Positions 2,028 through 64,000 of a stretch of 64,000 bases of DNA are shown here, in pieces; position 1 is the first letter of the stretch; each line of letters opens with the position of its first letter. The translations under genes and the position numbers were made by a program. Where the stretch lies: positions 140,337-204,336 of the IMG/VR virus record IMGVR_UViG_3300042887_005053, one strand, 5' to 3'. The notes beneath the pieces were generated by a model. The model did no database searches, was not told the DNA's origin, and worked only from the letters and a program-made list of their open reading frames with translations.

Positions 2028-3824
2028 ATGCCTGTTTACACCGTTTCTAATAATCCAAAGAATATACCAGGATTAAGGTTTTGGTTGGATGCCGCTGATG
2101 AGTCGACAGTAGATTATTTTAATAAAACAATTGGTGATTTTGCTGCAAGGACATATGGTGATACTAGTGGTATTCAAATGCCAAATCAACCGAATAGTAC
2201 TACATATCCTAACTTGCAAGCAGCTTTAGATCCAATTAATGGGTTTGTTACTTTAGAAATGGGAGTTGCTTCTGCACAGGTGTTATCTCCACTACCTATG
2301 CCTGGTACAGTATCATATAACATGGTGACATCAATTAGAGATAAAATTTCAAATACACTTGTAATTTCTACATATTCATTCACACGGGGTAATACTACCT
2401 CAAGAACGATCAGACCTAATTCGTTAATTGGTACACAATCACTAGGAAGAACCCAGTCTATCGTTGGAACAGTTAATTTGGTTGGTGATTATCGAACTAT
2501 GTCAAGAAGTATGCCATATGAGTATAATATTCCAGCACGATTGTACCCAGATTCTTGGTTTGGATTTGCAAGAAAATATCCAAGATATGAAGTAGGAGCA
2601 GTAAACGGAAAAAGTGCAATAAAATTCAACAAACCATTTCCTGGAGAAATTGGTATGATTGCTGACAATGTAGGTTTACTTGATAGTGCAACATATACGG
2701 TTTTTTGTGTTTATGCTCCTGTCAATCCAACGAGTTCCCTACAACTAGGTGCTGGGCTAACTGCTCAAGGTCAATATGTCGTATCAATTTATGATTCTAA
2801 TCGAATTTCAAGACACGGTGGATATCCTAATCTTGGATTTTTCTATGGTGATGGTAATCCTTACAATCAATCTATTGTTGTTACAACTCAATCGACTACT
2901 TTTTCCAGATTTATAAGATGGTCAAAGAATACTATGAATACAGCAAACAGTTCGATAGTTATTGCTCAGTTTAGAAATTCGGCCACATCTTCCAATGGGA
3001 TACCTTTGTATAAGATTCTTACTGAGTCGAATAATTATTTTATGTACGGTTTTACTGGTGTAGGTATTAATTCTGGATCAGGGAGTTTCTTTGATCATAG
3101 AAGAAATAACTCTAGATTTGTTATTGGCTATAATCCTACACTAGGTACAAGCTCATCACAAAGAGAGATATATAATTCGGGCCCGAAACAATTTACTGGC
3201 TACTTTTGTGAGTTTTTATATTATGATCGAGCTCTGACAGACTTGGAAATGTCAAAAGTAAATCAGTATTTAGTAAAGAAGTGGAATGGACCAGTGAAAC
3301 AGTTTCCAGAAAGTTTCATGGTAAGAGACTATACTGTGACTGGTATGCAGCAAACTACCACAAACATCAGTAATACAAATAGAACAGGTGCTTATCAATT
3401 TGAATATTTTTGGCAAACTACTGCTGGAGCACAACAAGGTAGAAATGCTACGGTCACTCCGATTTTAGTCAACACCACACAGCCAATTTTGAGTGGTACT
3501 CCGATGTATTGTAGATTGGAGATAATTCCAAATTTAGCTACTGGTAGTGCGGGTCACACGAATACTTGGAGACATTGGGGTATTTGGTGTGGTGATACTT
3601 CTGGCACTCCATTTGGTAGCTACAGATGGAGTTCAAGAAAACCAGACTTAGTATTCAGACCTGGATTAACCCAGGGTGTTTATGAGTCTACATTTTGTTG
3701 GCCACAGACTGGTAACTCGATGAAATGTGGTTGGGCTTCAACTTTGGGAATCCCTACTCAAGACTACGGATGGACTTTTTCTGGTTGGATAAACATGCAG
3801 TTTGGAAACTTAGAATCTATTTAA
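2028..3824 (+). CDS. Virion protein with LamG/concanavalin-like domain
   Basis: GLRFWLDAAD near the N-terminus and FTGYFCEFLYYDRALTDLEMSKVNQYLVKKW, typical of phage LamG-like domains. A late-type motif lies at 1994-2004. Confidence 0.6.
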   Translation: MPVYTVSNNPKNIPGLRFWLDAADESTVDYFNKTIGDFAARTYGDTSGIQMPNQPNSTTYPNLQAALDPINGFVTLEMGVASAQVLSPLPMPGTVSYNMVTSIRDKISNTLVISTYSFTRGNTTSRTIRPNSLIGTQSLGRTQSIVGTVNLVGDYRTMSRSMPYEYNIPARLYPDSWFGFARKYPRYEVGAVNGKSAIKFNKPFPGEIGMIADNVGLLDSATYTVFCVYAPVNPTSSLQLGAGLTAQGQYVVSIYDSNRISRHGGYPNLGFFYGDGNPYNQSIVVTTQSTTFSRFIRWSKNTMNTANSSIVIAQFRNSATSSNGIPLYKILTESNNYFMYGFTGVGINSGSGSFFDHRRNNSRFVIGYNPTLGTSSSQREIYNSGPKQFTGYFCEFLYYDRALTDLEMSKVNQYLVKKWNGPVKQFPESFMVRDYTVTGMQQTTTNISNTNRTGAYQFEYFWQTTAGAQQGRNATVTPILVNTTQPILSGTPMYCRLEIIPNLATGSAGHTNTWRHWGIWCGDTSGTPFGSYRWSSRKPDLVFRPGLTQGVYESTFCWPQTGNSMKCGWASTLGIPTQDYGWTFSGWINMQFGNLESI

Positions 3825-4079
3825 TAGTTCATCTAAATTTTGTTTATTAAAATCAACTAGATTATCTCCGCCATTTTTTAGATGATTATTTAATAACTCT
3901 TGATAATCTTCATAAGTGTAAAATTTTCCATCTATACCCATAATTACTTGAGTGTCAAATTTAGAAAGTGAATTTGGTAAATTTTGCTCTGGATAATTGG
4001 GTCCCATAACATGTTGACCAACTAATTCCCAACCACTAATCGACTCATTAAATTCATTAAATTTTTTAATTTTCATCAT
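3810..4079 (-). CDS. Small protein with N-terminal capsid-targeting-like tag
   Basis: Starts MKIKKFNEFNES. Confidence 0.6.
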   Translation of the reverse strand: MMKIKKFNEFNESISGWELVGQHVMGPNYPEQNLPNSLSKFDTQVIMGIDGKFYTYEDYQELLNNHLKNGGDNLVDFNKQNLDELLNRF

Positions 4080-4536
4080 CTGTTATAGGAATTTTTTCGA
4101 AGTACTCTTCCTGAGAAGTAAGTGAGTAACAATCGTGTTTGAAATCATAGGACAAATTATACAAAAACCTATCATATATTTTAGTAGTCTCTCCATGTTT
4201 CAATTTTAAAATTGAGACATCATTTTCAAAGTCATTATCAATTGAAATGATTTCATCATCAATTTTACCAAAACTATCATACAAATCACAGATAACTTTT
4301 TTACCAGATGATCTTAGTTCATCAATCTTAGAGCAAACATCATTTTTACTTAGATGTGAGAAACTCATTAAATCTTTTTCCAAAACTTTGTCAAACTTAG
4401 ATAGAAATTCTTCTTCTCTTTTGGTTAGTTTTTCACTTTTTGAAATTTTATCCAAAATAGAGTTAAGAGTCTCATCTTTTACAGACTCTCTCAAATTTAA
4501 ATATTTCGACCATTTTGTAAATGTCATAATTTTCAT
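4066..4536 (-). CDS. Hypothetical protein with DUF6576-like helical motif and tag-like N-terminus
   Basis: Contains LNSILDKISKSEKLTKREEEFL. A reverse-strand late motif lies at 4544-4554. Confidence 0.55.
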   Translation of the reverse strand: MKIMTFTKWSKYLNLRESVKDETLNSILDKISKSEKLTKREEEFLSKFDKVLEKDLMSFSHLSKNDVCSKIDELRSSGKKVICDLYDSFGKIDDEIISIDNDFENDVSILKLKHGETTKIYDRFLYNLSYDFKHDCYSLTSQEEYFEKIPITDDEN

Positions 4537-14530: not shown

Positions 14531-15901
14531 ATGACTAAAATATCAAATTATTCACAATTTATAACAGAAGCATTTCTAAATAAAACACAAGAAAAAGCTA
14601 TTGACACTATTCTACAATACCTTAAAAAGAAAATAGGTGTTGATTTTTATTCATATGAAGAAATATGGAACATTCAAAAAAGTGACGAGTTTCTTAAAGG
14701 TCAACTTTTTTTAACTCTATCATCAAATAAAGCAATTAGATTTAACTGGATCGAAAGAGACATATCAAGTGAGATACATTCAATAGATCTATGGACTGAT
14801 TTTGAATTTGATTCTAATCCTGACTTCACTTTACTATTAAATGAACTTTCGGTTGTTAAGGCTTTGCCTCATGTAGTAGACTTTTATAAAAATCCAGAAA
14901 TAATAGTAAAAACAAGTAAGAAAGATGTAGTATTTGAAGATTTAGAAATCGAGGATACTGATCCAAGAAAAAGACTTGAAGATGAAAGAAAAAAACTATC
15001 AAGATTAAGAAGTCCTGAGAAAATTGAACTTCAGAAAAGAAAAATAGAAAGAATAGAAGCAATTGTTGCACAAACTGAAAACTCTTCTATTGAAAGTGAA
15101 AAAATAAATCAACTTGATGATGAAATGAAAATTGATGTTTTTAAATCAATCGAACTTTATACTACTCAAGTTGCAAGAGGCAAGTCAAACTCATTGATTA
15201 TATCTGGTGATTCGGGTGTTGGAAAGACCCAAACCGTGAAAGATACCTTAACTTCACTTGGTATGAGAAAAGATGATGATTATTATTTTGCAACTGGTAC
15301 TGCAACAACAGCTGGTTTATATGAATTACTATTTAAGAACCGAAACAAACTAATTGTATTTGATGACTGTGATTCGGTATTAAAAGATCCAGAATCGGTC
15401 AATATATTAAAAGGAGCACTTGATACCTATGATGTTAGAGAAATATCTAAATTATCGAAAGGTAATACTTTTGATTCATCTGGATTAAGTGATGAAGAAG
15501 TTGATGTCCAGTTTAGCGAGACTGGTAAGTTTCCAAATAAATTCGATTTTACTGGACAAGTAATATTTATATCGAACTTACCAGAAAATAAATTTGATAA
15601 AGCACTATTATCGAGAAGTTTACATGTTGATGTGCATTTAGATAGACAAGAATTATTCGAAAGAATGAAGTCTATAATGACAAGAATATCTCCAGATGTA
15701 GATTTTGAGAAGAAACTGGAGGCATTAGAATATTTAACTTTTATATGTAACACTTATCCAACTAAGTTTGATCTTAATATCAGAACATTAATACATTCAA
15801 TCAATTTGAGAGCTCATAATGAAGAAATGATTAAGATTGGTGACAAAGAAGAACAAGTTTGGAAAGTTTTAATTAAAAAATATTTGGTTAAGTCAAGATG
15901 A
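14531..15901 (+). CDS. AAA+-type P-loop ATPase with tag-like N-terminus
   Basis: Walker A GDSGVGKT, Walker B IVFDDCD, sensor IFISN and an SRS arginine finger. The start is moved to 14531 because the ATG at 14525 overlaps the promoter motif. Confidence 0.8.
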   Translation: MTKISNYSQFITEAFLNKTQEKAIDTILQYLKKKIGVDFYSYEEIWNIQKSDEFLKGQLFLTLSSNKAIRFNWIERDISSEIHSIDLWTDFEFDSNPDFTLLLNELSVVKALPHVVDFYKNPEIIVKTSKKDVVFEDLEIEDTDPRKRLEDERKKLSRLRSPEKIELQKRKIERIEAIVAQTENSSIESEKINQLDDEMKIDVFKSIELYTTQVARGKSNSLIISGDSGVGKTQTVKDTLTSLGMRKDDDYYFATGTATTAGLYELLFKNRNKLIVFDDCDSVLKDPESVNILKGALDTYDVREISKLSKGNTFDSSGLSDEEVDVQFSETGKFPNKFDFTGQVIFISNLPENKFDKALLSRSLHVDVHLDRQELFERMKSIMTRISPDVDFEKKLEALEYLTFICNTYPTKFDLNIRTLIHSINLRAHNEEMIKIGDKEEQVWKVLIKKYLVKSR

Positions 15902-16476
15902 AACATTTAGAACTATTTGAATCATTCACTCTTATTAGTGAGAATCTGAAATATCATGTTGATAATAATATTCCGGTTTTAGAGAATGTGTTTAGACCAC
16001 ATTCAAAAGCTTTTTATGATTTGATAAAAGAAGCAAGAAATCTATTTGATGGTGGTAAAATTGGTGTATCAGAACATGATAAACATTTATTTGAAACAAC
16101 CGATTTAGGTTACTTTGATATATTTGAGAATGAAGTAGTACCACTTGATTTACCGATTGAAGTTGTTGAGGAAGTAAATGAGGCTGAGTATCACGGAAAA
16201 GAAGTTGAATTAAATAAACCAATTAGAAGTTCTGGTCCTAAAAAATATAAAGTTTATGTCAGGAATCCTAAAACTAAAAAAGTTATATGTGTTAATTTCG
16301 GGGATGTGAAAGGTGGACTAACTGCTAAAGTAAGTGATCCAGATGCTCGTAGAAGTTTTGCTGCTCGTCATCAATGTCACCTAAAGAAAGATAAGACAAA
16401 GCCTGGTTACTGGGCCTGTCGTGCGAATAGATACGCTAATTTGTGGGGTGGTAAAACATATCCCGGATACTGGTAA
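15898..16476 (+). CDS. Tagged protein with basic C-terminal domain (DUF6321-like)
   Basis: Starts MKHLELFESF. C-terminal KKYKVYVRNPKT...VNFGD...ARRSFAARHQC...PGYWACR. Confidence 0.6.
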   Translation: MKHLELFESFTLISENLKYHVDNNIPVLENVFRPHSKAFYDLIKEARNLFDGGKIGVSEHDKHLFETTDLGYFDIFENEVVPLDLPIEVVEEVNEAEYHGKEVELNKPIRSSGPKKYKVYVRNPKTKKVICVNFGDVKGGLTAKVSDPDARRSFAARHQCHLKKDKTKPGYWACRANRYANLWGGKTYPGYW

Positions 16477-16490
16477 AAATATATAGAACT

Positions 16491-17399
16491 ATGAAATACT
16501 TAAATACCTACAAATTATTTGAATCAGAAGAAGTAGTAAGCAACGAAGAAGTTACTGAACTAATTGAAGAGTGTAAAGACATTGTTGAGACATTCAATGA
16601 GTCAGAAGATACTTTTAAAGTAGCTAATTATGAAACGGGATTTGTTGCATATGACTCTTATTTGAAAAGAATAAGAAGTGGTGACTTTGACTCGAGACAG
16701 TCACATGAATCTGATATGGCTGCTATTAAATTTAATCTTGGTTTATCAAGTGATTTGAGTAACGGATATTTTAGAGATAACGAAGAAAGTGTTACTACAG
16801 AAAAAATAGACGGATTAATTGAACTATTGAGTAAATCGAAGATACTAGTTCAGAGATTGTCGAGATATTGTACTACAATTTATTATAAAATGACAGGTAA
16901 CTCAATTAGATTCATTTTAATATTCAAAAATCCAGATGAGGGTAGTAGTAAGGCAGCAAAAGTTACAAGATTATATAACAAGCTATCAAAAGATTTTAAA
17001 GATTATGACATGTGGAAAACTATGAATTTGGTTCAACTTAATCAAAGATCAAATGATAGAATTCCAGAAAAATATAGAGAGTTATATAGTTTACTTAAAA
17101 CTAATCCTAATCTAATTGATGGTAGATATGGTCAATGGGATGAAACAAGAAGAAGTAATTTACAGTTAAGATTTTCTTGTTCTGAAACATTTGATGGTAA
17201 TACAATTATTGTTAATGTCACTGGATTCAAATACAAAACATATATGATGGATAGATTCAAATCAATTAGATTATCTAATGAAGAGAAAGTAGAAGCAATG
17301 AAATGCATCGAACAGAAAGTTAAAAATAGTTTAAGAAGTGATGCCGATTCAATTGAAACTTCAATTGAAGGAAATCAGATAAAAATTAAGGTGAAATAA
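16491..17399 (+). CDS. Tagged hypothetical protein
   Basis: Starts MKYLNTYKLFES. A late motif lies at 16477-16486. Confidence 0.65.
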   Translation: MKYLNTYKLFESEEVVSNEEVTELIEECKDIVETFNESEDTFKVANYETGFVAYDSYLKRIRSGDFDSRQSHESDMAAIKFNLGLSSDLSNGYFRDNEESVTTEKIDGLIELLSKSKILVQRLSRYCTTIYYKMTGNSIRFILIFKNPDEGSSKAAKVTRLYNKLSKDFKDYDMWKTMNLVQLNQRSNDRIPEKYRELYSLLKTNPNLIDGRYGQWDETRRSNLQLRFSCSETFDGNTIIVNVTGFKYKTYMMDRFKSIRLSNEEKVEAMKCIEQKVKNSLRSDADSIETSIEGNQIKIKVK

Positions 17400-17638
17400 T
17401 GAAATACTTAAAGAAGTTTGAAGGATTTTCTAACAGAACTTGTGATAGATGTGGCGAGCGAACTAATACAATGAGTATGTCCTGGTTAAACACAGATGAG
17501 TGTTGTATGAATTGTTTAGAAATTGAAAAAGGAGAACCAGATTATATTTTGGCTAAAGAAATAGAATCCGAAGAAGTTAGAAAAGGTAATCTAAACTATA
17601 AAGGTATAAGAAATGAAGATAAACTGACACCGAGATAG
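17399..17638 (+). CDS. Tagged small zinc-finger protein
   Basis: Starts MKYLKKFEGF and contains CDRC...CCMNC. Confidence 0.65.
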   Translation: MKYLKKFEGFSNRTCDRCGERTNTMSMSWLNTDECCMNCLEIEKGEPDYILAKEIESEEVRKGNLNYKGIRNEDKLTPR

Positions 17639-17666
17639 AGAAGACTATATTATTAATATATAATTT

Positions 17667-18788
17667 ATGAATTTAGAAATAATTTATAAAAAAATATGTC
17701 AAAGAGGTCAAATAAGAGTATTAGATAGATCCATCTATACAGAAAAACATCATATTATTCCGAGATGTATGGGAGGTAACAACAATAAGGAAAATATAAC
17801 TAAATTAACCGCTAAAGAACATTTTATCTGCCATAAAATTCTATGTAAAATTTATCCATCCAACGAAAAGTTAAGATATGCCTTTTGGGCAATGTGTAAT
17901 CAAAAAGTAAATAGAGATTATGTGGTTTCTAGTAGAGATTATGAATATGCTAAAACAATTTGTTTAGAAATGTGGAGAAGACCAAAATCCCCCGAATCCA
18001 TAAAAAAAGGAGCAGATAAAAAAAGAGGCATAAAGGTAAATTATTTTATTTACCCAAAACGGATACAAGATGGTAATTCTAATCACAATCACGGTAAAAA
18101 GTGGATAACTAATATTTTAACAAGTGAATCAAAAATGATATTTGGTGATATTCCAGATGGATGGAAAATAGGAAGATCAAAAGTTGGCAGTTTGTGCAAA
18201 CCAAATTCAAAAGGTAGAAATTGGTATCATAATCCAGAAACAAATGAAGAAAAATACTTCAATTTTTCCGATAATCCACCAGGATGGATTAAGGGTAGAT
18301 CTAAAAATAAAAAAATTGGAGGAGATAATCTCTCCGGTAAGATTTGTTATTTCAACAAATCACTAAATAAAGAGAAATATTTTAAAGATGATGATATAAT
18401 ACCAGATGGGTGGATCAAGGGTAAGTTAAAAAAAAGAATTTGGTTTTATAATCTTGAATTAAATATGGAAAAATTATTCACTGAAGATTCCGCAGATGTT
18501 GGTTTTATTCGAGGTAGATTACCTAAATTACCATTTAGTGAAGAAATGAAAGAAACAAATGAATTTATAAGAATTTTTAAAAGAGACATAGATGAAAAAT
18601 CACTTGTTTGGCATAGAGATAGAGAAGATAGAATTATTGAGTCGATTGGTGAAACTGATTGGATGATACAATTAGATAATGAACTGCCAAAGTCGTTAAA
18701 TCAAAAAGTGTTCATTCCAAAAGGAGTTTATCATAGAGTTATAAAAGGAACTAATAATTTGAAAATAAAATTAATTAAATTAGTTTAA
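17667..18788 (+). CDS. HNH homing endonuclease fused to a C-terminal cupin-like domain
   Basis: EKHHIIPRCMGG...NITKLTAKEHFICH, then four WxxNxxxxxEK...PxGWxKG repeats, then LVWHRDREDR...FIPKGVYHRVIKG. Confidence 0.75.
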   Translation: MNLEIIYKKICQRGQIRVLDRSIYTEKHHIIPRCMGGNNNKENITKLTAKEHFICHKILCKIYPSNEKLRYAFWAMCNQKVNRDYVVSSRDYEYAKTICLEMWRRPKSPESIKKGADKKRGIKVNYFIYPKRIQDGNSNHNHGKKWITNILTSESKMIFGDIPDGWKIGRSKVGSLCKPNSKGRNWYHNPETNEEKYFNFSDNPPGWIKGRSKNKKIGGDNLSGKICYFNKSLNKEKYFKDDDIIPDGWIKGKLKKRIWFYNLELNMEKLFTEDSADVGFIRGRLPKLPFSEEMKETNEFIRIFKRDIDEKSLVWHRDREDRIIESIGETDWMIQLDNELPKSLNQKVFIPKGVYHRVIKGTNNLKIKLIKLV

Positions 18789-18798
18789 TATATAGAGT

Positions 18799-19380
18799 AT
18801 GAAACATTTGAAATTATTTGAAGAATTTATTGATTTCAACTTAGATTGGGTATCAGCCAAAATGAATGAACTATCAGATTTGGTATCTGATTTTTCAAAT
18901 ATTGAGTTTAAATATCATATTGAAAAAGTCAAGGATAATGAAGATTTACAGGGTCTTTTAGTTATAGAACTTACAGCGACTGATGCGAACATAACTCTTA
19001 TATGGACTATTGATTTAGACTCTCCATCAATTACTATTGAAGAAATTGAAGGTGATGAACATGAAAATATTTATGATTCAAAACTTGAAAGTATTGAACA
19101 AGCTCTTGATTTAGTTGAGAAAAATATACAAGATTTATTTGATATTAATGAGAGAGTCAAGGCTCAAAGATATAAAGGAAAAAAAATACCTGGTAAATAC
19201 TTAGCTGGACCACATCCTGGAAAAATGAAGAAGGAAATTGATAAGTATAGAGGTAAAAGTGAATATAAAAAAGAATGGGATGCTGATTATACTACTGGAA
19301 AAGGTGGTAAAGGTAAAAGAGTAAAAACTAAGAAATCATCAGCCACAAAAGCTTACCAAAAAATGTTTGGTGATAAATAA
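18799..19380 (+). CDS. Tagged protein, acidic N-half and very basic C-terminal domain
   Basis: Starts MKHLKLFEEF. After DINE comes Lys-rich KIPGKYLAG...KTKKSSATKAYQKMFG. Confidence 0.65.
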   Translation: MKHLKLFEEFIDFNLDWVSAKMNELSDLVSDFSNIEFKYHIEKVKDNEDLQGLLVIELTATDANITLIWTIDLDSPSITIEEIEGDEHENIYDSKLESIEQALDLVEKNIQDLFDINERVKAQRYKGKKIPGKYLAGPHPGKMKKEIDKYRGKSEYKKEWDADYTTGKGGKGKRVKTKKSSATKAYQKMFGDK

Positions 19381-19391
19381 AAATATATTTC

Positions 19392-19952
19392 ATGGAAATT
19401 AAGAAATTTATTCGTCAAGAAAAAACTACAAATGTAGAAAAACCACAAACAAGTGGAACAGTAATCACTCCTTCAAAGTTGACTGAAGAAACCATTTCAA
19501 TTTTGACTGAAAGAATAAAAGATGAGTATACTGCTCACTATTTCTATAGATCAGCTGCTAACTGGTGTCGTAACATGAACTATAAAAAAGCATCACAATT
19601 CTTTGATAATGAATCAAGTTCAGAATTAGAACATGCTAAAGGATTACAAGAGTATATGGATGACTTTAATGTTCAACCACATATTCTACAAACAGAAACA
19701 AACTTTGAGTTTGATTCATTAGTTGATATTATAAATGGTGCATATCAAATGGAACATTCGTTGATGAATTCATATAATCAAAGTTCATCAGCATTATTTA
19801 CTACTGACTTAACTACATTTGATTTCTTAGCTAATTATAGAACAATTCAAAAAGAAGCTGTAATTGAGTATTCTGATTTATTGAATGCATTAATGTTAGT
19901 AAATCATACTGATAAGTTTCAGGTTCTTTATTTTGAACAAACATATTTTTAA
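19392..19952 (+). CDS. ftnA: Ferritin (non-haem FtnA-like)
   Basis: Ferroxidase-centre pattern EYTAHYFY...ELEHA...MEHSL...TTFDFL...IQKEAVIE. Confidence 0.8.
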   Translation: MEIKKFIRQEKTTNVEKPQTSGTVITPSKLTEETISILTERIKDEYTAHYFYRSAANWCRNMNYKKASQFFDNESSSELEHAKGLQEYMDDFNVQPHILQTETNFEFDSLVDIINGAYQMEHSLMNSYNQSSSALFTTDLTTFDFLANYRTIQKEAVIEYSDLLNALMLVNHTDKFQVLYFEQTYF

Positions 19953-19956
19953 TACA

Positions 19957-20217
19957 GTGAAATACTTAAAGAAATTTGAAGCATATACATTCGAGGACTT
20001 TACTCTCAGTGATATTGAAGATGTTAAAGATTTGTTAGAATATGGTTTGCCTATTGAACAAATTGCGATAGAATTAGACTTTACGGTCGATAAAGTGAAA
20101 CAAATAGTTCACTCTATTGAAAAGAATAAAAAAACGACTACAAAAGGATGTGGTTGTTGTTCAGATTGTACCGGTGAAGTGGATTGTGAATGTGGTTGTG
20201 TTGAGTGTGAATGCTAA
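19957..20217 (+). CDS. Tagged small protein with HTH-like segment and Cys-rich metallothionein-like tail
   Basis: The GTG start at 19957 gives MKYLKKFEAY. Contains GLPIEQIAIELDFTVDKVKQI and the tail GCGCCSDCTGEVDCECGCVECEC. Confidence 0.65.
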   Translation: MKYLKKFEAYTFEDFTLSDIEDVKDLLEYGLPIEQIAIELDFTVDKVKQIVHSIEKNKKTTTKGCGCCSDCTGEVDCECGCVECEC

Positions 20218-20253
20218 AAATTAGTTACTATAAACTATAAATAAAATTATTAT

Positions 20254-20625
20254 ATGGAAAAATTAATGACATTCGAATCTTTCTCTGATGAAATAGATTA
20301 TGAAAACTACTACTATTTAGTAGAAGATATATTACTACTTGAAGAAGTAACAGCTGGGTCAGTTGATACTGCTGGGTCAAAAGCATCAAAGATGATAAAA
20401 AAGAAATCAGAACAAAGTGGTATTCCTGTTGGAATTCTTAAAAAGGTTTATAAGCGAGGGCAAGCTGCTTGGAATGCTGGTCATCGTCCAGGTACACCAC
20501 AACAAGCTTGGGCTACTGGTAGGGTAAATAGTTTTATAACTGGTGCTGGTGGAGCTAGAAAAGCTGACAATGACTTATGGGCAAAAGCTAAAGCTGCTAA
20601 AGCTAGAAAAAAGAAGAAAAAATAA
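20254..20625 (+). CDS. Tagged protein with basic DUF5824-like domain
   Basis: Starts MEKLMTFESF and contains SGIPVGILKKVYKRGQAAWNAGHRPGTPQQAWATGRVNSF. Confidence 0.6.
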   Translation: MEKLMTFESFSDEIDYENYYYLVEDILLLEEVTAGSVDTAGSKASKMIKKKSEQSGIPVGILKKVYKRGQAAWNAGHRPGTPQQAWATGRVNSFITGAGGARKADNDLWAKAKAAKARKKKKK

Positions 20626-21089
20626 TGAAATACTTAAAAAGATTTAATGAAAATTTAGATAATAATTCTTATAAAATTCATATACCCGAAAAATATTCAG
20701 GGGTTAGAATGGAATTTGGGGAATTTGCCTCACCACAAGACATAATTGATACGTACAATCAGATAGTAGAAGAAGGAGTTCCTTTGGTAAGTTATTCCGA
20801 GGATGGGTTCTTCACTAATGAAGATGATGAAGAAATTGAAGAGTTTATAATTCTTGATGAATTGAATTATGCTATTGTTGGTGAAGAAGAAGATAATATG
20901 GGAGATTTACCAAAACAAAAAAGATTTGGTGATGGTAATGAAAATGAAATCTATTTAACCAATAATGTAAGATTCCACCGTAAAGGGAATGAGTTAACTT
21001 TAAGTTACACCCCAACTAAAATTGGAGGGGGACTTAGAATATCTGATGAACAGAAGAATATGTTAATTGATTTTTTAACCAAGAATTAA
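20625..21089 (+). CDS. Tagged acidic hypothetical protein
   Basis: Starts MKYLKRFNEN. Confidence 0.6.
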   Translation: MKYLKRFNENLDNNSYKIHIPEKYSGVRMEFGEFASPQDIIDTYNQIVEEGVPLVSYSEDGFFTNEDDEEIEEFIILDELNYAIVGEEEDNMGDLPKQKRFGDGNENEIYLTNNVRFHRKGNELTLSYTPTKIGGGLRISDEQKNMLIDFLTKN

Positions 21090-26037: not shown

Positions 26038-29000
26038 TTAGATAGATGTATAAGTTACTCTACTCCAAGTAGCGGTCGTACCTCTATAAAAATTGAGTGT
26101 TTCTTGATCAGTATTATATACCGTCAGTCCATCGGCGGGACTCGAAATTGCTAGTATTTGAGCGGTCGTGAGTCTTGGTAACAATATACCCTGTGAGTCA
26201 GAGGTGAAATTTACTAAAGTAGTATTTGTATCACCAGTTTGTTTATTGACTGTCAACATCGCTGAGGGTGATTGTGTACCAACACCAAAGTAACCCTGTG
26301 AATTCACATTAATTCTTTGTTGACCAGAGCCATTGGCAATTATAATCGAGTTTGTGATTCCGGGTGGTAAATTCACTCTAGCTCCGATTACCGTATTATT
26401 AAAGTTTGAATTTGCTGATGTTGTTATTCCAAATCCAATGTAGGTATTGTTTGATCCAAATGTCATACCAACGGGTACACCAATACCGATATTACCTCCA
26501 ATAAGAGTATTGAAACTACCGGAAGCTAAACCAGCACCTGAGATAGCTCCTATATAGGTATTATCGGTATCCGTCCAATCAGGTGATATTGAGGATGAAA
26601 TTGCACCACCAGCACTGGCTCCTGCCATAAAACCAATAGCTGTATTTCTTGTTCCTTTACCCAAACTTTTAAGTGATTCCGCACCAACACCAACATTATA
26701 CGAACCGGTCGCTAATAACATGGTGTTATGTCCAAGTGCTAAGTTGTTATCACCTATTCTATTAATCGAAAGTGCGAAATATCCGATGGCTATATTTCTA
26801 TATCCGGTTGTATTCGCTATTAAAGCGGCTCGGCCTATCCCAACATTAAACGATGCGTTTGAGTTTGAAGTATTGTCGACGTTATTTCGGAGTGCTTGGT
26901 ATCCGATGGCAATATTGTCTATTCCTATAGTGTTTTCTTGAAGAGCGCCCGATCCAATTGCAATATTTCTAATACCAACTGTATTTCTAAGTAAAGCACT
27001 TGTGCCTATTGCTATCGTATCTTCGCTGTAGGTCGAAGCTTGAAGTGCACTTGTGCCTATTGCAATATTGTTAAAAGCATATCCGGTTGAGTTTGTCCCA
27101 CTTAATCTACTTGGTGCGGATCCAAGATTATAACCAGCTCTCCATCCAATCGCAACATTGTTAATACTATAAGAACCAAGTTGCATAGCTTGATATCCTA
27201 CAGCCACATTTGCACTTGAGTTCAATGCGTTAGACATTGCTTCATAACCAACAGCAACTGACTGGCTACCCTGATTAAATTGTAATGTATAGTTACCTAC
27301 ACCTACTTGAAATGACGGATAATGTATTTGTGTCAATCCTGGCATTATAGCCGAAGCTGTGACTGAGCTATACATTTGCATGGATCTATATCCAATCGAT
27401 AAGTTTTCATTTGGTGGTCTTCTGAAATTAACTGTTGAAGTTGTTGCCCAGTCGACTGTATCTGTTCCTGCAACAACCGCAAGTTGCGGTATACCCATAT
27501 AATATTGAGACTCACCTCCTATTGCAATATTGTTAAAAGCATATCCGGTTGAGTTTGTCCCACTTAATCTACTTGGTGCGGATCCAAGATTATAACCAGC
27601 TCTCCATCCAATCGCAACATTGTTAATACTATAAGAACCAAGTTGCATAGCTTGATATCCTATAGCCACATTTGCACTTGAGTTCAATGCGTTAGCCATT
27701 GCTTGATAACCAACTGCTGTTGATTGACTACCCTGATTAAATTGTAATGTATAATTACCTACACCTACTTGAAATGCTGGATAATGTATTTGTGTCAATC
27801 CTGGCATTATATTCGAAGCTGTGACAACGCTATACATCGCCATGGATTTATATCCAATCGATAAGTTTTCATTTGGTGGTCTTCTGAAATTAACTGTTGA
27901 AGTTGTTGCCCAGTCGACTGTATCTGTTCCTGCAACGACCGCAAGTTGCGGTATACCCATATAATATTGAGACTCACCTCCTATTGCTACATTGAAACTA
28001 CTATTAGTAGCGTTACCGAGTGCATAACCACCAATCGCCACATTCCAACTACCCGACAGACTTTGAAACAAACTTTCATATCCCATTGAGACATTATTAC
28101 TTCCTCGTAGAAAATATCCTGAGTTTCCACCTATAGTTATATTATTAGCTCCACTAAGATTAGATGCTTGTGATTGAACACCGATCGCGACATTGTTACT
28201 ACCGGGATTACCAGCATTTAGAGTATTTAATCCTATTGCTACATTCCCATTCGTTGTTTGAACACCATTTCCAGCATTTGAACCAAGTGCTGTGTTATTT
28301 ATACCGGTTGTCAAATTTTGTAATGATCTCCATCCGATACCTACATTGTGACCATCTTGTCCTGAATATCTTTCAAGTGCACTATGACCAATTGCAATAG
28401 TTCTACTAGCCATTGTTGCGGTGTGTAATGTGAAGTTGCCAATTGCGACATTGAAGTTTGCTTGTGATGTATTATTCGCTACTGATCCAAATAAATTGTT
28501 TAAATCAAAGTTACGTATAGAACCCAAGTTATAACCCGCTCTAAATCCAATAGCGACATTGTTCGTACTATGAGATCCAAATGACAAAGCCTCACCACCA
28601 ATTGCTGTGTTTCTGAATCCAGTAACATTATTTTGCATTGCCGCATAACCAATTGAAGTGTTGAAACCTTTAGCTCTAGTCCTTTCTCCAAACGATGCGT
28701 AGGAAGTCAAAACTCCATCTCCCTTAGACCAACCTATTGTTGAATATGTTGTTCCTTGGTTATTCTGTAGTGCAAAATTACCAATTGCGACATTATATGA
28801 AGATGAAACTGTATATGTCAAACCAAACCAAAAAGATCCTGTAGTTCCCTCAAATGCTCTATAACCTATTGCCAAGTTATTAGAAGATGGTGTTATACCC
28901 GCCCATCTTGAGTCATAGAATCCCATGTATCTATGTGTCCACTGACCAATACCAATATTTTGATTGTAGTTTGATAAAAAGTTAGTAGAGTCTGATCCTG

Positions 29001-38780: not shown

Positions 38781-39356
38781 TCACTTTTTGGTGAACTTAT
38801 TAAAACGATAAAGATCAATTCTCTTCTTACTAGCCATTAAATCATCTTTGAAGACCTTTAGTTTATCCTTGGCTATTTTTTCTAAGTTGACTATTTCCAT
38901 TTGAAGTTTAGAAATATCCTGTGTTTTTTGACGAATCTTATCCTCAGTAAGTTTGATATTAGCTGAAAGAGAATCCTTTGAACTTGGATTTGCTTTTATA
39001 TTGGATTGTTCGTCACTGATATCTGTTTTCCAGTCTTTAATCTGATCCTGTAGATTCTTCAAATCTCTTCTTTTATCACAAGATTGTGCCCAAATCGCTA
39101 AAACTGGGTTATGAAATTTCAATTTCTTTTTATTATCAGTTTTATCAATTATTTTTTGAGCAGCTAATTTATCGATTAAGTCTTTTTCATCTTTATAAGT
39201 CATATAAATGTTATTTACTGTAACTTTAAGTCTGTCAAAATCTTTGATTTGATTTTCAAGCTCATTATATCTATTCATGTCCGATGCGATCTGAGGTGGA
39301 TCGGTTTTATCAGCATTGTATAATTCTAAAATAAATTCTTGAAAGTACTTAATCAT
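38781..39356 (-). CDS. Tagged coiled-coil protein
   Basis: Starts MIKYFQEFILE, very close to the T4 IP tag MKTYQEFIAE. Confidence 0.65.
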   Translation of the reverse strand: MIKYFQEFILELYNADKTDPPQIASDMNRYNELENQIKDFDRLKVTVNNIYMTYKDEKDLIDKLAAQKIIDKTDNKKKLKFHNPVLAIWAQSCDKRRDLKNLQDQIKDWKTDISDEQSNIKANPSSKDSLSANIKLTEDKIRQKTQDISKLQMEIVNLEKIAKDKLKVFKDDLMASKKRIDLYRFNKFTKK

Positions 39357-47601: not shown

Positions 47602-48078
47602 ATGAATAGAATATCAACTTATCAGCAATTTAATGAGGAAATTTTGGGTGGATTAGGAGACAAGTTAAAAAAACTTGGTAGTTCACTAAAGAGACCATTT
47701 CTAAGTAATTCAGTTAAAACAGAATACTCTAAAGAATTAAAGCAATATGATTTAGTAATTCAGTCTACTGAAGACAGACAAGAAATGAAAATATTTCATA
47801 ATAAGAGATTAGTTGGTGATATTAAACTATCAGATGATAGTAAAAATTATCCAATATGGATATTATCTTTCTACTTTTATGAAAGTGAAGTTCCAAAAGA
47901 TGATAAGAAGTATAAAAGTCCAGAAAAAATAGAAGGGCAAACAGAGCAGCCTTACGCAAAAGGTTCTAAGAAGATCAACAATGATTCTGATGATGCCGTT
48001 AGAACATTTTGGAAATGGTGGTCGACTAATACAAAGTCTGGTAAGTTAAAAAATCCTTCTTTTAAGATTAAATCTTAA
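47602..48078 (+). CDS. Tagged hypothetical protein
   Basis: Starts MNRISTYQQFNEE, with a late motif at 47589. Confidence 0.6.
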   Translation: MNRISTYQQFNEEILGGLGDKLKKLGSSLKRPFLSNSVKTEYSKELKQYDLVIQSTEDRQEMKIFHNKRLVGDIKLSDDSKNYPIWILSFYFYESEVPKDDKKYKSPEKIEGQTEQPYAKGSKKINNDSDDAVRTFWKWWSTNTKSGKLKNPSFKIKS

Positions 48079-50854: not shown

Positions 50855-51460
50855 ATGAAACACATCAAACAATTTGAGTCTTATAGAGTTGAAAGAAGAA
50901 GAGAGGAAATTATTAAAGAATCTGTACTTCAAGTAAATGACATTTACAAAGTAAAGGTTATGGTTGATATACCTCAATCATTGTTAAATGCTTATGTTAA
51001 AAAAGTAAAAGATACAGCTGGAAAAAATCTTCGTCAGTTTTATGGTGATATGGATTTAGCTGAAGAGATTGTAAAGTATGTTACTATGAATTTTATTGAT
51101 TCTGAAAAAATTCCTACAAATGCATTAGTTGGCGGAGCTCAGGCTCAAGGTCAAGCTCAACCACAAGCTCAACCACAAGCTCAACCACAAGCTCAACCAC
51201 AAGCTGAAACTGAGACACAAACTGAAACTGAAGAACCGGCTCAAGTTCAAGTTCAAACTGAAGCTCAACCAGAAGAAACAACACAAGCTCAACCACAAGA
51301 GGAAAAAGAAGAAAATTTCGAAGAAGTAGCTGAAGAAGGTGGTGAAGAAAAAGAAGAAACTACTGAAGAAGGTGGTGAAGAAAAAGAAGAAACTACTGAA
51401 GAAGGTGGTGAAGAAAAAGAAGAAACTACTGAAGAAGGTGGTGAAGAATTACCAGCTTAA
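50855..51460 (+). CDS. Tagged protein with Q/P and acidic repeats (prohead core-like)
   Basis: Starts MKHIKQFESY, contains QAQP x4 and EEGGEEKEETT x3, and has a strong late promoter. Confidence 0.6.
   Translation: MKHIKQFESYRVERRREEIIKESVLQVNDIYKVKVMVDIPQSLLNAYVKKVKDTAGKNLRQFYGDMDLAEEIVKYVTMNFIDSEKIPTNALVGGAQAQGQAQPQAQPQAQPQAQPQAETETQTETEEPAQVQVQTEAQPEETTQAQPQEEKEENFEEVAEEGGEEKEETTEEGGEEKEETTEEGGEEKEETTEEGGEELPA
51152..51447 (+). repeat. Coding tandem repeats: 12-bp CAAGCTCAACCA x4 and 33-bp GAAGAAGGTGGTGAAGAAAAAGAAGAAACTACT x3.5
   Basis: Directly visible at 51152-51205 and 51332-51447. Confidence 0.9.
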
Positions 51461-51510: not shown

Positions 51511-51529
51511 GTTTAATATATAAATACAT

Positions 51530-60140: not shown

Positions 60141-61823
60141 ATGGCTTCTTACAATCCACTCAATTCTCAAAATCAGAATAACACATATATTTCATCAGCG
60201 GTTGAAAATAAGGGTTTATTCAATAGACTTCTTAGAAATCTTTCTAATTTTGGAATGAGATATGATGATATGATTATCAGAAATACCGTAGGTGTTGGTA
60301 TTAATGAAGATCCATACTCACAAAAAAATAATTCGATGTATGACTTCTTTAGTCAGAAGGCCGTTTCATCAGTATTAAACAGAAAGTCAGTTCCTTATTT
60401 GGATAGATCATATGCGGATAAAAGAAGAATTCTAAGAGAGTATTCAATTAAAGATGAACTAAGAGATTTCGTTTCTGCAGTTGCTGATGAGTCGATTATC
60501 TATAATGATGACAAAGACTTCTGTGCACCTAAGCCTCTTTCAAATGATTATTCACAAGATATAAAGGATAAGTATCAAGAATATTTTGAAGTAATCTATC
60601 ACAGATTTGGTTTTGGTGATAGTATAACAGCTTGGAATATGATGAAAGACTTTTTGATTGATGGTTATGTTGCAATTGAAATAGTTTGGGATGACAAAAA
60701 GAAGAATATCATACATTTTAATAGATTAAGACCAGAAACATTAGTACCAGCTTATGAACCTTCAGTTGGTAATCTTTGGATTCAATATCCAGAAGATCCG
60801 CAATTAAGAAGAATATTTCTTGATTCACAGATTGTATTTGTTTCTTACTCAACACAGAATGATTATTCCGAGACTTCTTATTTAGAGGGTCTAATTAAGC
60901 CGTATAATCAATTAAAGATATTAGAGCAAACTAGAATTATGTTTAACATAATTAATGCTACTATTTATCAAAAATTTACAATCCCAATTAAGGGATTACC
61001 AAGACAAAGAGCTGAAGAACAAATTGGGCAATTAATAGCTGACTATTCAGAGGAAATTGAATGGGATGACACATTAGGAACAGTTTCTATCAATGGTAGA
61101 AAACATTTACCCTATAATAAACAAGTTTGGTTCCCAGAAGGTGATGCTGGTACTCCAGCAATGGAATTGGTATCACCAGAGGGTCATAACTTAAATGAGA
61201 ATGATATGTTAACTTGGTTTTACAACATTCTTAAAAGAGCTTCTAAGATTCCTTTCCAGAGATTTGAGAAAGAGAATGGTGGTGGTAACATATTTAGTGA
61301 TGCATCTGAGATGACTAGAGATGAAATAAAGTTTAATAACTTTATCAATCGACTAAGAGCAAATTACAAAGAGTTGATTGTAAAACCTCTAAAGCTTCAA
61401 ATGTGTATGGAATTCCCAGAGTTGAAAGATGATGAGGTTTTCCTAAATCAATGTGACATTAATTTCAATTCAAATCAATTGTTCGAAGAGTGGAAGAAGT
61501 TGGCAAACTTTGAAAAAAGAGCTGGTATATTATCAACTTTATTAGGAATACAAACTGCTGATGGTCAACCATACTTTCACATCGATTATCTAATCGATAA
61601 AGTTATGAAATTATCTGAAGAAGAAAAGCAAGAAAACAAAGCATACTGGATCAAATCGACTAAAGGTGGTGGTGAAGCTGGTGAGGTCGAAGGTGGAATG
61701 GAGGGAGCTGAGGCTGGAATGGAAGGTGGTGAAGCACCAACTGAAACACCTGAGGCAGCAACTGAGACACCTCCAGCTGAAGAGGGAGGAGGTGAAGCTC
61801 CACCGTCAGAATTCGAATTCTAA
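60141..61823 (+). CDS. gp20: Portal protein (T4 gp20-like)
   Basis: FLIDG, SYLEGLIKPYNQLKILE, ILKRASKIPFQR and EMTRDEIKFNNFINRLR. Confidence 0.92.
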   Translation: MASYNPLNSQNQNNTYISSAVENKGLFNRLLRNLSNFGMRYDDMIIRNTVGVGINEDPYSQKNNSMYDFFSQKAVSSVLNRKSVPYLDRSYADKRRILREYSIKDELRDFVSAVADESIIYNDDKDFCAPKPLSNDYSQDIKDKYQEYFEVIYHRFGFGDSITAWNMMKDFLIDGYVAIEIVWDDKKKNIIHFNRLRPETLVPAYEPSVGNLWIQYPEDPQLRRIFLDSQIVFVSYSTQNDYSETSYLEGLIKPYNQLKILEQTRIMFNIINATIYQKFTIPIKGLPRQRAEEQIGQLIADYSEEIEWDDTLGTVSINGRKHLPYNKQVWFPEGDAGTPAMELVSPEGHNLNENDMLTWFYNILKRASKIPFQRFEKENGGGNIFSDASEMTRDEIKFNNFINRLRANYKELIVKPLKLQMCMEFPELKDDEVFLNQCDINFNSNQLFEEWKKLANFEKRAGILSTLLGIQTADGQPYFHIDYLIDKVMKLSEEEKQENKAYWIKSTKGGGEAGEVEGGMEGAEAGMEGGEAPTETPEAATETPPAEEGGGEAPPSEFEF

Positions 61824-62415: not shown

Positions 62416-64000
62416 ATGAAACCTATACTAATCGTTGAAAACAATTCAAACCCATTGGTTGAGAATGTTCAAGTGTCTGGTGGTAGTAAGGATTATGTTT
62501 TAGGTGGTATTTTCACTGAGTTTGGTATTAAAAACCGTAACGAAAGAATCTATACTGCTGACAAATTCATTCCTTGTTTACAAGAGTTAAATGAGCGTAT
62601 CAACAACATGGGAGTTGTATATGGCGAATTTGATCACCCAGATGTTTTTGACACATCATTAGCAAGAGCATCACACACTATAAGAAAAGCTCATTATGTT
62701 AAAGAACATAACAGAGTTGAGGGTGAGATCAAATTGTTAAGTACATACTGGGGTAAGGAAGCTAAGGCTTTAGTTGATGATGGTTGTCCTGTATTCGTTT
62801 CTTCAAGAGCTGCTGGTATCACTGAATCTGATGGCACTGTTACTTTGAAGAAGTTGTTTACTTACGACATCGTTGCTGATCCTGGATTTGCTTCTGCTAG
62901 AATGAAATCAATTAATGAATCTTTTGGATTCACAGAACAAAATAACTTTAGGATATACGAAATGTCCGATGAGTCAAAAATAAACGAACTATTCAATATG
63001 AACAAGAATGAATTCGTTACCAAGCAGCAATTAGCTGACTATTCTAAGTATTTAGTAAATGAAATTGCTTCTACTAAGAAAGCTGCACAAACTGCTATTA
63101 AATCAGGTAACATCAATCCAAAGAAATTGGAGCAACTTCTTGAGTACTACGAAGAACTTAATAAGACAAATGCTCAAATGGTTAAGTATTTAGATTACTT
63201 GGCTGAGAAAGTACAAGTTGTTGTTAATGAAAACATTTCATTAAAGTCTACAACTGACAAATTAATTTCTCATAATGATTATTTAGCTGAGAATTTAGAA
63301 AAAGCTATTAATTATTCTGATTATATCGCTGAGAATTTGGATAAGAACATTTCTTATTCTGAATATTTGGCTGAAAATCTCGATAAGAACATTTCTTACT
63401 CTGAGTATTTAGCTGAGAATTTGGATAAGAATATCGCTTATTCTGAATATCTTGCTGAGAACTTAGATAAGAATATCGCTTATGCTGAGTATATTGCTGA
63501 AAATTTGGATAAGAACATTTCTTATTCTGAATATTTGGCTGAACATTTAGATAACTCTATTGCTTATTCTGAGTATTTAGCTGAACATGTTGAGGGTAAC
63601 ATTGCTTATTCTGAATATATCGCTGAACATTTAGATGACAACATCGCTTATTCTGAGTATATCGCTGAAAATCTTGACAAGACTGTTTCTTACGCAGGAA
63701 TGATAGCTGAGAAATTAAACACTACTAAATTAAATGAAAGTGTTGAAGAAAATACATTCCCAACATTAGAAGACGCTGGGTTCGCTATGATCGCAGCAGA
63801 AGAAGAAGGTGGAATGCCAATGCCTCGCATGCCTAAAGAAGAAGGTGATGCACATGAAGAGGAAGGTGATAACTTACCACATGTTATGGCATCTGAGGAA
63901 TCAGAATTGAGTAATGACAGTCACGAAACTCATGAAGAAGAGGGTGATAAATATGAGGAAGAAGGTGATAAATATGAGGAAGAAGGTGATAAATATGAAG
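62416..64000 (+). CDS. gp21: Prohead protease (T4 gp21-like) fused to scaffold-like repeat region (3'-truncated; absent from ORF track)
   Basis: Translated by hand: MKPILIVE...KNRNERIY...GEFDHP...SH...VSSRAAG...TYDIVADPGF. The frame stays open to the window end. Confidence 0.9.
   Translation, partial: MKPILIVENNSNPLVENVQVSGGSKDYVLGGIFTEFGIKNRNERIYTADKFIPCLQELNERINNMGVVYGEFDHPDVFDTSLARASHTIRKAHYVKEHNRVEGEIKLLSTYWGKEAKALVDDGCPVFVSSRAAGITESDGTVTLKKLFTYDIVADPGFASARMKSINESFGFTEQNNFRIYEMSDESKINELFNMNKNEFVTKQQLADYSKYLVNEIASTKKAAQTAIKSGNINPKKLEQLLEYYEELNKTNAQMVKYLDYLAEKVQVVVNENISLKSTTDKLISHNDYLAENLEKAINYSDYIAENLDKNISYSEYLAENLDKNISYSEYLAENLDKNIAYSEYLAENLDKNIAYAEYIAENLDKNISYSEYLAEHLDNSIAYSEYLAEHVEGNIAYSEYIAEHLDDNIAYSEYIAENLDKTVSYAGMIAEKLNTTKLNESVEENTFPTLEDAGFAMIAAEEEGGMPMPRMPKEEGDAHEEEGDNLPHVMASEESELSNDSHETHEEEGDKYEEEGDKYEEEGDKYE
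63274..63720 (+). repeat. About 11 copies of a 42-bp/14-aa repeat YSEY(L/I)AE(N/H)LDKNI(S/A)
   Basis: GAATAT at 63361 and GAGTAT at 63403 give period 42, with synonymous variation between copies. Confidence 0.92.
63937..64000 (+). repeat. 21-bp repeat encoding EEEGDKY (3 or more copies)
   Basis: GAAGAAGGTGATAAATATGAG-like units at the window end. Confidence 0.85.

Follow-up and report, generated by a model that had tools for sequence, protein, structure and literature searches.

Why should viral proteins with unrelated bodies begin with much the same ten or so residues? The question is raised by a stretch of 64,000 nucleotides (nt) from the IMG/VR virus record IMGVR_UViG_3300042887_005053 (positions 140,337 to 204,336), hereafter the window, in which a block of genes at 14531-21089 and several genes elsewhere share a short N-terminal pattern, here called the tag. 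It spans residues 1 to about 13 and comes in two forms: class 1, MK[HY][LI]Kx[FY] and then Glu, and class 2, [YF]xxF[ILV]xE. The first-pass annotation had proposed that such a pattern loads many proteins into the capsid, as the capsid-targeting sequence (CTS) of phage T4 does. The tag occurs at N-termini far above chance. On balance, we lean towards regarding it as an expanded T4-type CTS, from which packaging and cleavage of the tagged proteins are inferred.

The statistical reality of the tag was assessed in the window and in the uncultured phage LR756502.1, which was analysed over 638 kb of its 642 kb (906 open reading frames, ORFs). When the window was translated in six frames, 8 of 2098 Met positions matched the strict pattern M[KR][HY][LI][KEN].[FY][ENK], and all eight are real ORF starts (15898, 16491, 17399, 18799, 20625, 50855, 51530 and 52571). 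A ninth gene with a strict-pattern peptide, 19957, starts with GTG. In LR756502.1, the pattern occurs 65 times among 25,716 Met positions, nearly always where an ORF of 75-367 codons has its first Met. A class 1 profile of 14 columns, built from 60 LR756502.1 N-termini and without T4 data, scored at least 12 bits, its cut-off, on 120 of the 961 N-termini of LR756502.1 and the window. Among the controls, this score was reached by 2 of 3136 20-mers beginning at an internal Met, and by none of the 3212 random internal 20-mers or the 4530 composition-matched shuffled N-termini. The class 2 profile, with a cut-off of 10 bits, picked out 33 N-termini versus 1 of 3136 controls. Combined, the two classes mark 139 of the 906 LR756502.1 ORFs (15%), compared with about 0.1% of control peptides. 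Chance or composition as the source of the tag is ruled out by the internal-Met, random-segment and shuffle controls, and the shared N-terminus first noticed by eye is thus real.

The tag has no hydrophobic stretch; charged and aromatic residues alternate in it. A Sec, Tat or lipoprotein signal peptide was rejected as there is no basic N-region with a hydrophobic core of at least 7 residues behind it, and a hydrophobic or predicted membrane segment of any kind is present in 1% of tagged proteins versus 12% otherwise. The tagged proteins are also small and acidic. No class 1 tagged protein of LR756502.1 exceeds 367 amino acids (aa; P ~1e-7), and their isoelectric point (pI) has a median of 5.1 versus 5.7, with 73% lying below pI 6.

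In the window, about 17 tagged proteins had been claimed, nine of them in the block. Eleven are solid: ten of class 1 (nine with ATG starts, together with the GTG gene 19957) and one of class 2 (14531). Another four are borderline (38781-39356, 39358-42165, 47602 and 20254), whereas two drop out, as the N-terminal extension of the ferritin-like protein 19392 is not a tag by either profile and a tag on 4066-4536 (-) is likewise unsupported by the profiles. The block itself holds seven solid tags and a degenerate one, along with the untagged ferritin-like gene and an untagged HNH gene. The scale had been put too low, since the tag is found on about 15% of the proteome across a whole phage clade. 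The GTG start of 19957 lies four bases past the ferritin stop codon, and the tag peptide is otherwise canonical; the signal is therefore independent of the ATG context.

It is the peptide that is under selection. Synonymous codons vary freely in the tag: Leu4 is written TTA 43 times, CTA 20, CTT 6 and TTG 5, Lys5 is AAA 40 times and AAG 34, His3 is CAC 33 times and CAT 23, and Ser is drawn from both TCN and AGY. This places the selection on the peptide, and an RNA-level motif is ruled out by the codon analysis. The tag is also portable, sitting on unrelated bodies as had been supposed. When 121 tagged proteins were stripped of their first 16 residues and compared by BLASTP, they fell into 94 components, 87 of them singletons, with two paralogue groups of 16 and 8 members. 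The few bodies recognised by Pfam have different folds: phage lysozyme, SAM methyltransferase, SET, HNH and PPK2, and further T4 Rnl1-like RNA ligase, ankyrin, Acb1/2H-like phosphoesterase, DHH, DUF5824 and AAA ATPase. Simple paralogy is ruled out by the all-against-all BLASTP and by these differing folds. DUF6576 was found both on an untagged window protein (42366) and on one tagged ORF, probably of LR756502.1; one body type therefore exists both ways.

The class 1 tagged gene 51530, which is conserved throughout the clade, illustrates how the tag is maintained. Among the best 120 of its 957 homologues, which are about 60-99% identical, each N-terminal variant listed carries the tag pattern; in their alignment, columns 1-10 are conserved, variation is confined to columns 11-15 before the body, and high conservation of the body sets in at about column 16. 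In the AlphaFold model of this protein, the mean predicted local distance difference test score (pLDDT) is 82.6, residues 1-11 lie below 50 and the fold begins at residue 14, so that the tag is predicted to be unstructured and outside the fold. The protein had been called a cysteine hydrolase. A weak fold hint survives of that claim, as the best match of a Foldseek search of the model against the PDB was the nicotinamidase Pnc1 with a TM-score of 0.45; nothing in that search was significant, and the body has no Pfam or PHROGs match.

What, then, does the peptide resemble? In T4 internal protein (IP) III, it is known by experiment that residues 4 and 7 of the CTS serve targeting and residues 8 and 10 processing (PMC9026906). 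From these four residues, the pattern [YF]..F[ILVM].E was derived, with T4 sequences taken from the GenBank record. Beginning at residues 2-10, it occurs in 23 of the 906 LR756502.1 ORFs, where 0.87 would be expected from its internal frequency, a 26-fold enrichment. The profiles were also run on the complete T4 genome, as 566 first-ATG ORFs of at least 40 codons in six frames. At the top of the class 1 ranking stood IPI (11.4 bits), followed by gp61.1. The class 2 profile put gp61.1, IPII and IPIII at the top (about 12 bits, the next ORF scoring 5.6 bits), a ranking that is partly circular as this profile was seeded with the T4-derived pattern. The proposed resemblance to the T4 CTS was borne out in these two ways. 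T4 gp61.1 (gene 61.1, AF158101 18966-19130 (-)) is a hypothetical protein of 54 aa starting MKTFKEFIKE, and it may be an unrecognised CTS-bearing protein.

The aromatic pair [YF]xxF is shared by class 2 with the YK[IL]F and FExF forms of class 1, and it is missing from the [YF]NES form, which makes up 29 of 111 class 1 tags. The first Glu stands at position 8, 9 or 11 in 91 of the 111. If a cut is placed after this Glu, P3 is hydrophobic or aromatic in 76-81% of tags, and P1' is Ser, Ala or Gly in 44-57%, compared with 15% after any Glu. The tags thereby appear to end in the manner of gp21 substrates.

The two classes, as their intermediates indicate, are one signal. In the AAA ATPase 14531, the class 2 stretch is NYSQFITEA, and among the best 120 homologues of this protein all the intermediates from class 2 to class 1 occur at one position, in the series MKTLLKYSNFIKE-AFL, MKHLNKFNQFLNE-AFL and MKYLIKFNE-SFL, the tags ending in E-[AS]-FL. 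A similar switch is seen for the borderline class 2 protein 38781-39356, whose orthologue in the uncultured phage LR745206.1 bears a class 1 tag, MKYLKKYKIFLE, of 24.6 bits. It would appear from this that class 1 is a shortened class 2 in which the final Glu and the small residue have been kept. Among the other window genes, the LR745206.1 orthologue of 50855 is likewise tagged (12.6 bits), and orthologues of the weakly scoring 39358-42165 start MRYLKQREEF and MKYLSKRSEY. About one in seven of the best 120 AAA ATPase homologues are long, about 700-795 aa, with the intein or homing-endonuclease domains PF05204, PF05203 and PF14528; an intein therefore invades the gene in some relatives.

The tagged genes share their upstream DNA as well. 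The heptamer ATATATA was found in the upstream 60 nt for 59% of class 1 tagged genes, compared with 23% of the remaining genes and 2.9% of random windows. When the position in operons is counted, 131 of the 139 tagged genes of LR756502.1 (94%) stand behind this motif versus 286 of 767 untagged ones (Fisher 1e-39), in agreement with the earlier remark that nearly all tagged genes follow a shared promoter motif. Taken by gene class, the tag is carried by 31% of the genes in the ATATATA class versus 1.6% of the remaining genes. The motif also precedes the genes for portal, protease-scaffold, major capsid protein (MCP), terminase and sheath, and it is not found in front of the SbcD and clamp-loader genes. 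It is best read as a putative late promoter analogous to that of T4, with the timing presumed, because a gp55-like sigma factor is present. The T4 late promoter is TATAAATA. In LR756502.1, the end of ATATATA falls 4-6 nt 5' of the ATG in 51 of 111 tagged and 69 of 793 untagged genes, and this sharp peak implies leaderless transcripts; no Shine-Dalgarno sequences are visible upstream of the window genes. Window examples of the motif just 5' of the ATG lie at 16474-16490, 18783-18798 and 51513-51529. In the structural genes, it sits 20-27 nt upstream.

The tagged genes form arrays, with 24 strict matches in 35 kb of LR756502.1, and these arrays are hypervariable with a fast turnover. For the block 15898-21089, orthologues are missing at the corresponding locus of two close relatives, and by BLASTP only one tagged gene of the window has a tagged orthologue in LR756502.1.

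A CTS needs head-assembly machinery of the T4 type, and by homology this phage encodes it: a gp21-like prohead protease, a scaffold, a gp20-like portal and a gp55-like sigma factor (coordinates in the table). In the alignment of the LR756502.1 protease orthologue with T4 gp21, the GE..HP and SSR motifs are kept, and the window protease has the same motifs. The protease ORF, which runs past the window end, continues into a scaffold-like region of 14-residue repeats with a consensus of about YSEYLAENLDKNIA; the protease-scaffold is presumed to be the partner on which the tag docks and by which it is processed. In LR756502.1, the orthologue has 699 aa, and in the window an acidic 7-residue repeat (EEGDKY) follows the 14-residue repeats. 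A gp23-like MCP is present in the relative. MCP, sheath and portal are themselves untagged.

The source of the window is recognisable at the protein level only. Its G+C content is about 30%, and a megablast of the tagged block against 50,697 phage records gave no match, leaving the window without a close nucleotide match there. The tail sheath is 55-57% identical to those of LR745206.1 (634 kb) and LR756502.1 (642 kb), and about 30% identical to those of the Lak megaphages and Tenacibaculum phage pT24. Genomes of this kind, of 634-735 kb, are included in the Mahaphage clade, for which Bacteroidetes are the predicted hosts (PMC7162821). Judged by these proteins, the window is part of a Mahaphage-type huge phage whose nearest public relatives are of 634-642 kb.

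Beyond these genomes, the DNA pattern of one tag variant was found in nine IMG/VR contigs, which measure 17-476 kb, have a G+C content of 20-30% and in several cases carry runs of tagged ORFs. Relatives of the protease occur on 354 IMG/VR contigs, and in 80 of these, tags are carried by 69 of the 1422 ORFs that surround the head genes. A 43-kb piece of LR756500 (462 kb) has hybrid tags such as MKYIQTYKDFLLEA, and a 40-kb piece of LR756501 (735 kb) has weak tags only. No tags were seen in a 44-kb piece of Lak-A1 or in the 50-kb head and tail region of pT24; both are large Bacteroidota phages with T4-like heads, so a head of this type does not require the tag. The tag DNA pattern has 2 matches in 185,579 bacterial and archaeal genomes, both in one metagenome-assembled genome, and one of them is on a contig as long as a tagged IMG/VR viral contig. 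A host-type signal is ruled out by this near absence from prokaryotic genomes. The literature searched holds no description of the motif or of capsid targeting in huge phages; nor did it yield a virion proteome for the clade or a cultured phage to which one could be linked.

If the tag is an expanded CTS, its working may be pictured as follows. Late transcription of the gp55 type from ATATATA would yield the head proteins and, alongside them, over 100 accessory proteins that are small, soluble and mostly acidic. Each of the latter would expose an unstructured tag with the [YF]xxF aromatic/hydrophobic pair and then hydrophobic-x-Glu with a small residue. The tag would dock the protein on the scaffolding core, made of the gp21-like protease fused to the 14-residue-repeat scaffold. 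As the shell closes round this core, the protease would cut past the tag Glu and free the cargo, which would be delivered with the DNA at the next infection. A wider claim, that a clade of huge Bacteroidota-type phages gives about 15% of its genes (about 140 proteins per genome) to capsid-loaded, injected cargo by means of a T4-like tag, is put forward tentatively. Such cargo would include counter-defence and repair enzymes, namely Acb1/2H-like phosphoesterase, RNA ligase, methyltransferases, nucleases and lysozyme.

Several points weigh against an expanded CTS. The clade is uncultured, and scaffold binding, encapsidation, cleavage and injection are all steps that we infer. The likeness to the T4 CTS, as read from the sequences, rests on about 10 residues, and to this is added the circularity in the class 2 ranking. 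A strict [LIVM]-x-E is present in only 52% of class 1 tags. When the relative's MCP is aligned to T4 gp23, there is no Glu at the position of the gp23 cleavage site; a Glu-specific protease is therefore unconfirmed. The tagged bodies, with their median pI of 5.1, are acidic, in contrast to the basic T4 IPs. There is no precedent for about 140 cargo species in one genome, and PPK2, RNA ligase and methyltransferase bodies would serve equally in the cytoplasm.

Alternatively, the tag could be a docking or localisation peptide for another common late partner, the proteins acting unpackaged in the producing cell. The partner might be a chaperone or unfoldase of the phage, an assembly factory or a compartment, an adaptor for timed degradation or a membrane surface (the tag being an amphipathic helix). 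Peptide-level selection and portability suit any peptide signal, acidic soluble bodies and housekeeping-type enzymes need no injection, and the sampled parts of Lak-A1 and pT24 are untagged despite their T4-like heads. We regard such a partner as rather unlikely all the same. It leaves unexplained the match to the experimentally defined positions of the T4 CTS, the top ranks of the IPs and the hydrophobic-x-Glu-small ending, and predicted membrane segments are rare among tagged proteins. A role in expression is improbable. Here the tag would help leaderless late mRNAs to be expressed, initiation or early elongation being aided, without Shine-Dalgarno pairing, by the first codons or by the nascent peptide. 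No Shine-Dalgarno sequence is indeed visible, and the leaderless-type spacing is strongly tied to the tag; yet this spacing also occurs in 69 untagged genes and is absent from more than half of the tagged ones. Moreover, synonymous sites are free, so that the RNA sequence is not conserved, and tags occur on operon-internal genes with overlapping stop and start codons (15898, 17399 and 20625). MCP, sheath and portal, expected to be the highest expressed, have no tag, and conserved aromatics with a fixed Glu are unexpected for an A/U-rich ramp.

The quick turnover of tagged arrays between relatives, the promoter that often stands directly before each gene and the paralogue groups of 16 and 8 members might point instead to the spread of cassettes, in which a module of promoter and first codons serves as homology for recombination or duplication and the peptide is a functionless by-product. 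This is the least probable of the explanations, and a very doubtful one. Recent gene conversion is made less likely by the codon diversity in the tag and by the differing spacers that separate promoter and ATG, and the tag is kept in the best 120 homologues of 51530 although the adjacent linker varies. The AAA ATPase orthologues, too, keep their tag while changing its form, which indicates purifying selection on the peptide. An expanded T4-type CTS is thus left as the reading towards which we lean.

The tagged genes and their neighbours are listed in the table. The HNH gene within the block (17667) is a mobile insert. It is one of three HNH-type homing endonuclease genes in the window, each with its own ATATATA, that break up otherwise syntenic modules. 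ATATATA is also found upstream of three very large genes of 1898, 2207 and 1407 aa, which are called late. The last of these encodes the tail sheath, which is about twice as long as T4 gp18. A protein of 520 aa with DUF7487 and a Mom-like domain suggests a putative Mom-type DNA modification. A clamp loader and an SbcD-like nuclease are also among the window genes.

Table. Tagged genes, head-assembly genes and other features of the window, in order of position
Position	Strand	Feature	N-terminus	Score or match
3810..4076	-	small tagged protein	MKIKKFNEFNES	class 1 13.0 bits, class 2 9.9 bits
8757-14453	-	very large gene, 1898 aa		
14531..15901	+	AAA ATPase, relative of T4 NrdC.10	class 2 tag MTKISNYSQFITE then AFL	17.6 bits; phrog_1250
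15898..16476	+	class 1 tagged	MKHLELFESF	19.2 bits; C-terminal domain matches phrog_7595
16491..17399	+	class 1 tagged, body without assignment	MKYLNTYKLFES	24.2 bits; ATATATA ending 5 nt 5' of ATG
17399..17638	+	class 1 tagged, small Cys-rich protein	MKYLKKFEGF	22.4 bits; body matches C-terminal part of phrog_27033
17667..18788	+	HNH homing endonuclease, untagged		no tag score; phrog_655 E = 4.7e-39
18799..19380	+	class 1 tagged, Lys-rich C-terminus	MKHLKLFEEF	22.7 bits
19392..19952	+	ferritin-like protein	35-residue N-terminal extension	class 1 score 1.5 bits; PF00210 E = 3e-17 on residues 36-167
19957..20217	+	class 1 tagged, GTG start, Cys-rich C-terminus	(M)KYLKKFEAY	strict pattern match
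20254..20625	+	DUF5824 protein	degenerate tag MEKLMTFESF	class 1 score 3.0 bits; PF19141 E = 3e-14
20625..21089	+	class 1 tagged	MKYLKRFNEN	24.4 bits
23231-24793	+	520-aa protein		DUF7487, Mom-like domain
26038-32661	-	very large gene, 2207 aa		
32707-34404	-	HNH-type homing endonuclease		
34502-38725	-	tail sheath, very large gene, 1407 aa		
38781..39356	-	191 aa, adjoins tail sheath gene	borderline class 2 tag MIKYFQEFILE	class 2 9.0 bits
39358..42165	-	935 aa	weak, tag-like MRYLKHRQEFLIKE	4.8 bits
42366-42764	+	untagged protein		DUF6576
45446-47590		T4-type large terminase		
47602..48078	+	158 aa	weak, class 2-like MNRISTYQQFNEE	class 2 4.3 bits
48353-49252	-	HNH-type homing endonuclease		
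50855..51460	+	class 1 tagged	MKHIKQFESY	16.2 bits
51530..52150	+	class 1 tagged, conserved clade-wide	MRHIKLYENFES	22.4 bits
52571..53179	+	class 1 tagged	MKYLKSFNES	23.7 bits
56608..56973	+	gp55-like late sigma factor		phrog_234 E = 4.6e-7
60141..61823	+	portal, T4 gp20-like		phmmer with T4 gp20, E = 6.5e-24
62443..64000	+	gp21-like prohead serine protease with scaffold-like region, ORF past window end		phrog_207 E = 5.4e-31
63276-63672		scaffold-like region, 9.5 copies of 14-residue repeat		
63932-63998		acidic 7-residue repeat		

Were the tag a capsid address label, a function could be given to much of the additional coding capacity of huge phages, namely that of a hypervariable arsenal delivered as protein at infection. 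The first-response counter-defence would then grow from the three internal proteins of T4 to more than 100, by far the largest protein-delivery repertoire of any virus. The injected proteins of uncultured phages would become predictable from the N-terminus with a profile of about 12 residues, and the tag would offer a compact, modular means of loading arbitrary foreign proteins into very large capsids. Even with a destination other than the capsid, a peptide signal on 15% of a viral proteome would be, as far as the searched literature goes, an unreported phage sorting system.

Among known systems, T4 is the nearest. Its CTS has affinity for the core and is removed by gp21, 20-200 copies of a foreign protein can be loaded by it, and the IP repertoire varies among T-even phages as anti-restriction equipment (PMC9026906, PMC3012670, 10.1101/2022.04.14.488369). 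Like the T4 CTS, the tag is an N-terminal peptide of about 10-19 residues on small, otherwise unrelated proteins, with Y/F-x-x-F aromatics, then hydrophobic-x-Glu and a small residue. The setting is also similar, as hypervariable loci (in T-even phages, the IP loci), a gp21-type protease, a scaffold core, a gp20-type portal and gp55-type late transcription (putative in this phage) come together in both. Whereas T4 has three IPs, about 140 ORFs (15%) are tagged here. Compared with MKTYQEFIAE of T4, class 1 (MK[HY]LKx[FY] then Glu) has a longer front part and a shorter back part; the bodies are acidic, not basic, and the scaffold is fused to the protease and made of 14-residue repeats.

The ejection and inner-body proteins of SPN3US and phiKZ offer a second likeness in their N-terminal propeptides and gp21-related protease. 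SPN3US has about 50 head proteins, many of the head-internal ones being processed by that prohead protease, and the propeptides are thought to be prohead-targeting, with no single motif common to all (PMC5694885). Those propeptides are mostly longer than 100 residues, whereas here one short consensus tag is found on more than 100 proteins.

Encapsulin cargo peptides resemble the tag in being short and portable on unrelated enzymes. In encapsulin systems, such a peptide sends unrelated enzymes, ferritin-like ones included, into a shell of the HK97 fold. That peptide is usually C-terminal, rarely N-terminal, and binds the shell protein, whose gene adjoins that of the cargo, whereas the tag is N-terminal in a phage whose head is built on a scaffold, and the ferritin-like gene of the block is untagged. 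An encapsulin cargo-loading peptide was rejected, as the tag is N-terminal and genome-wide, and no encapsulin was found in Pfam and PHROGs scans covering most window ORFs. On the reading preferred here, the principle is that of T4, and what is new is the form of the sequence, the partner made of protease and scaffold, and the scale.

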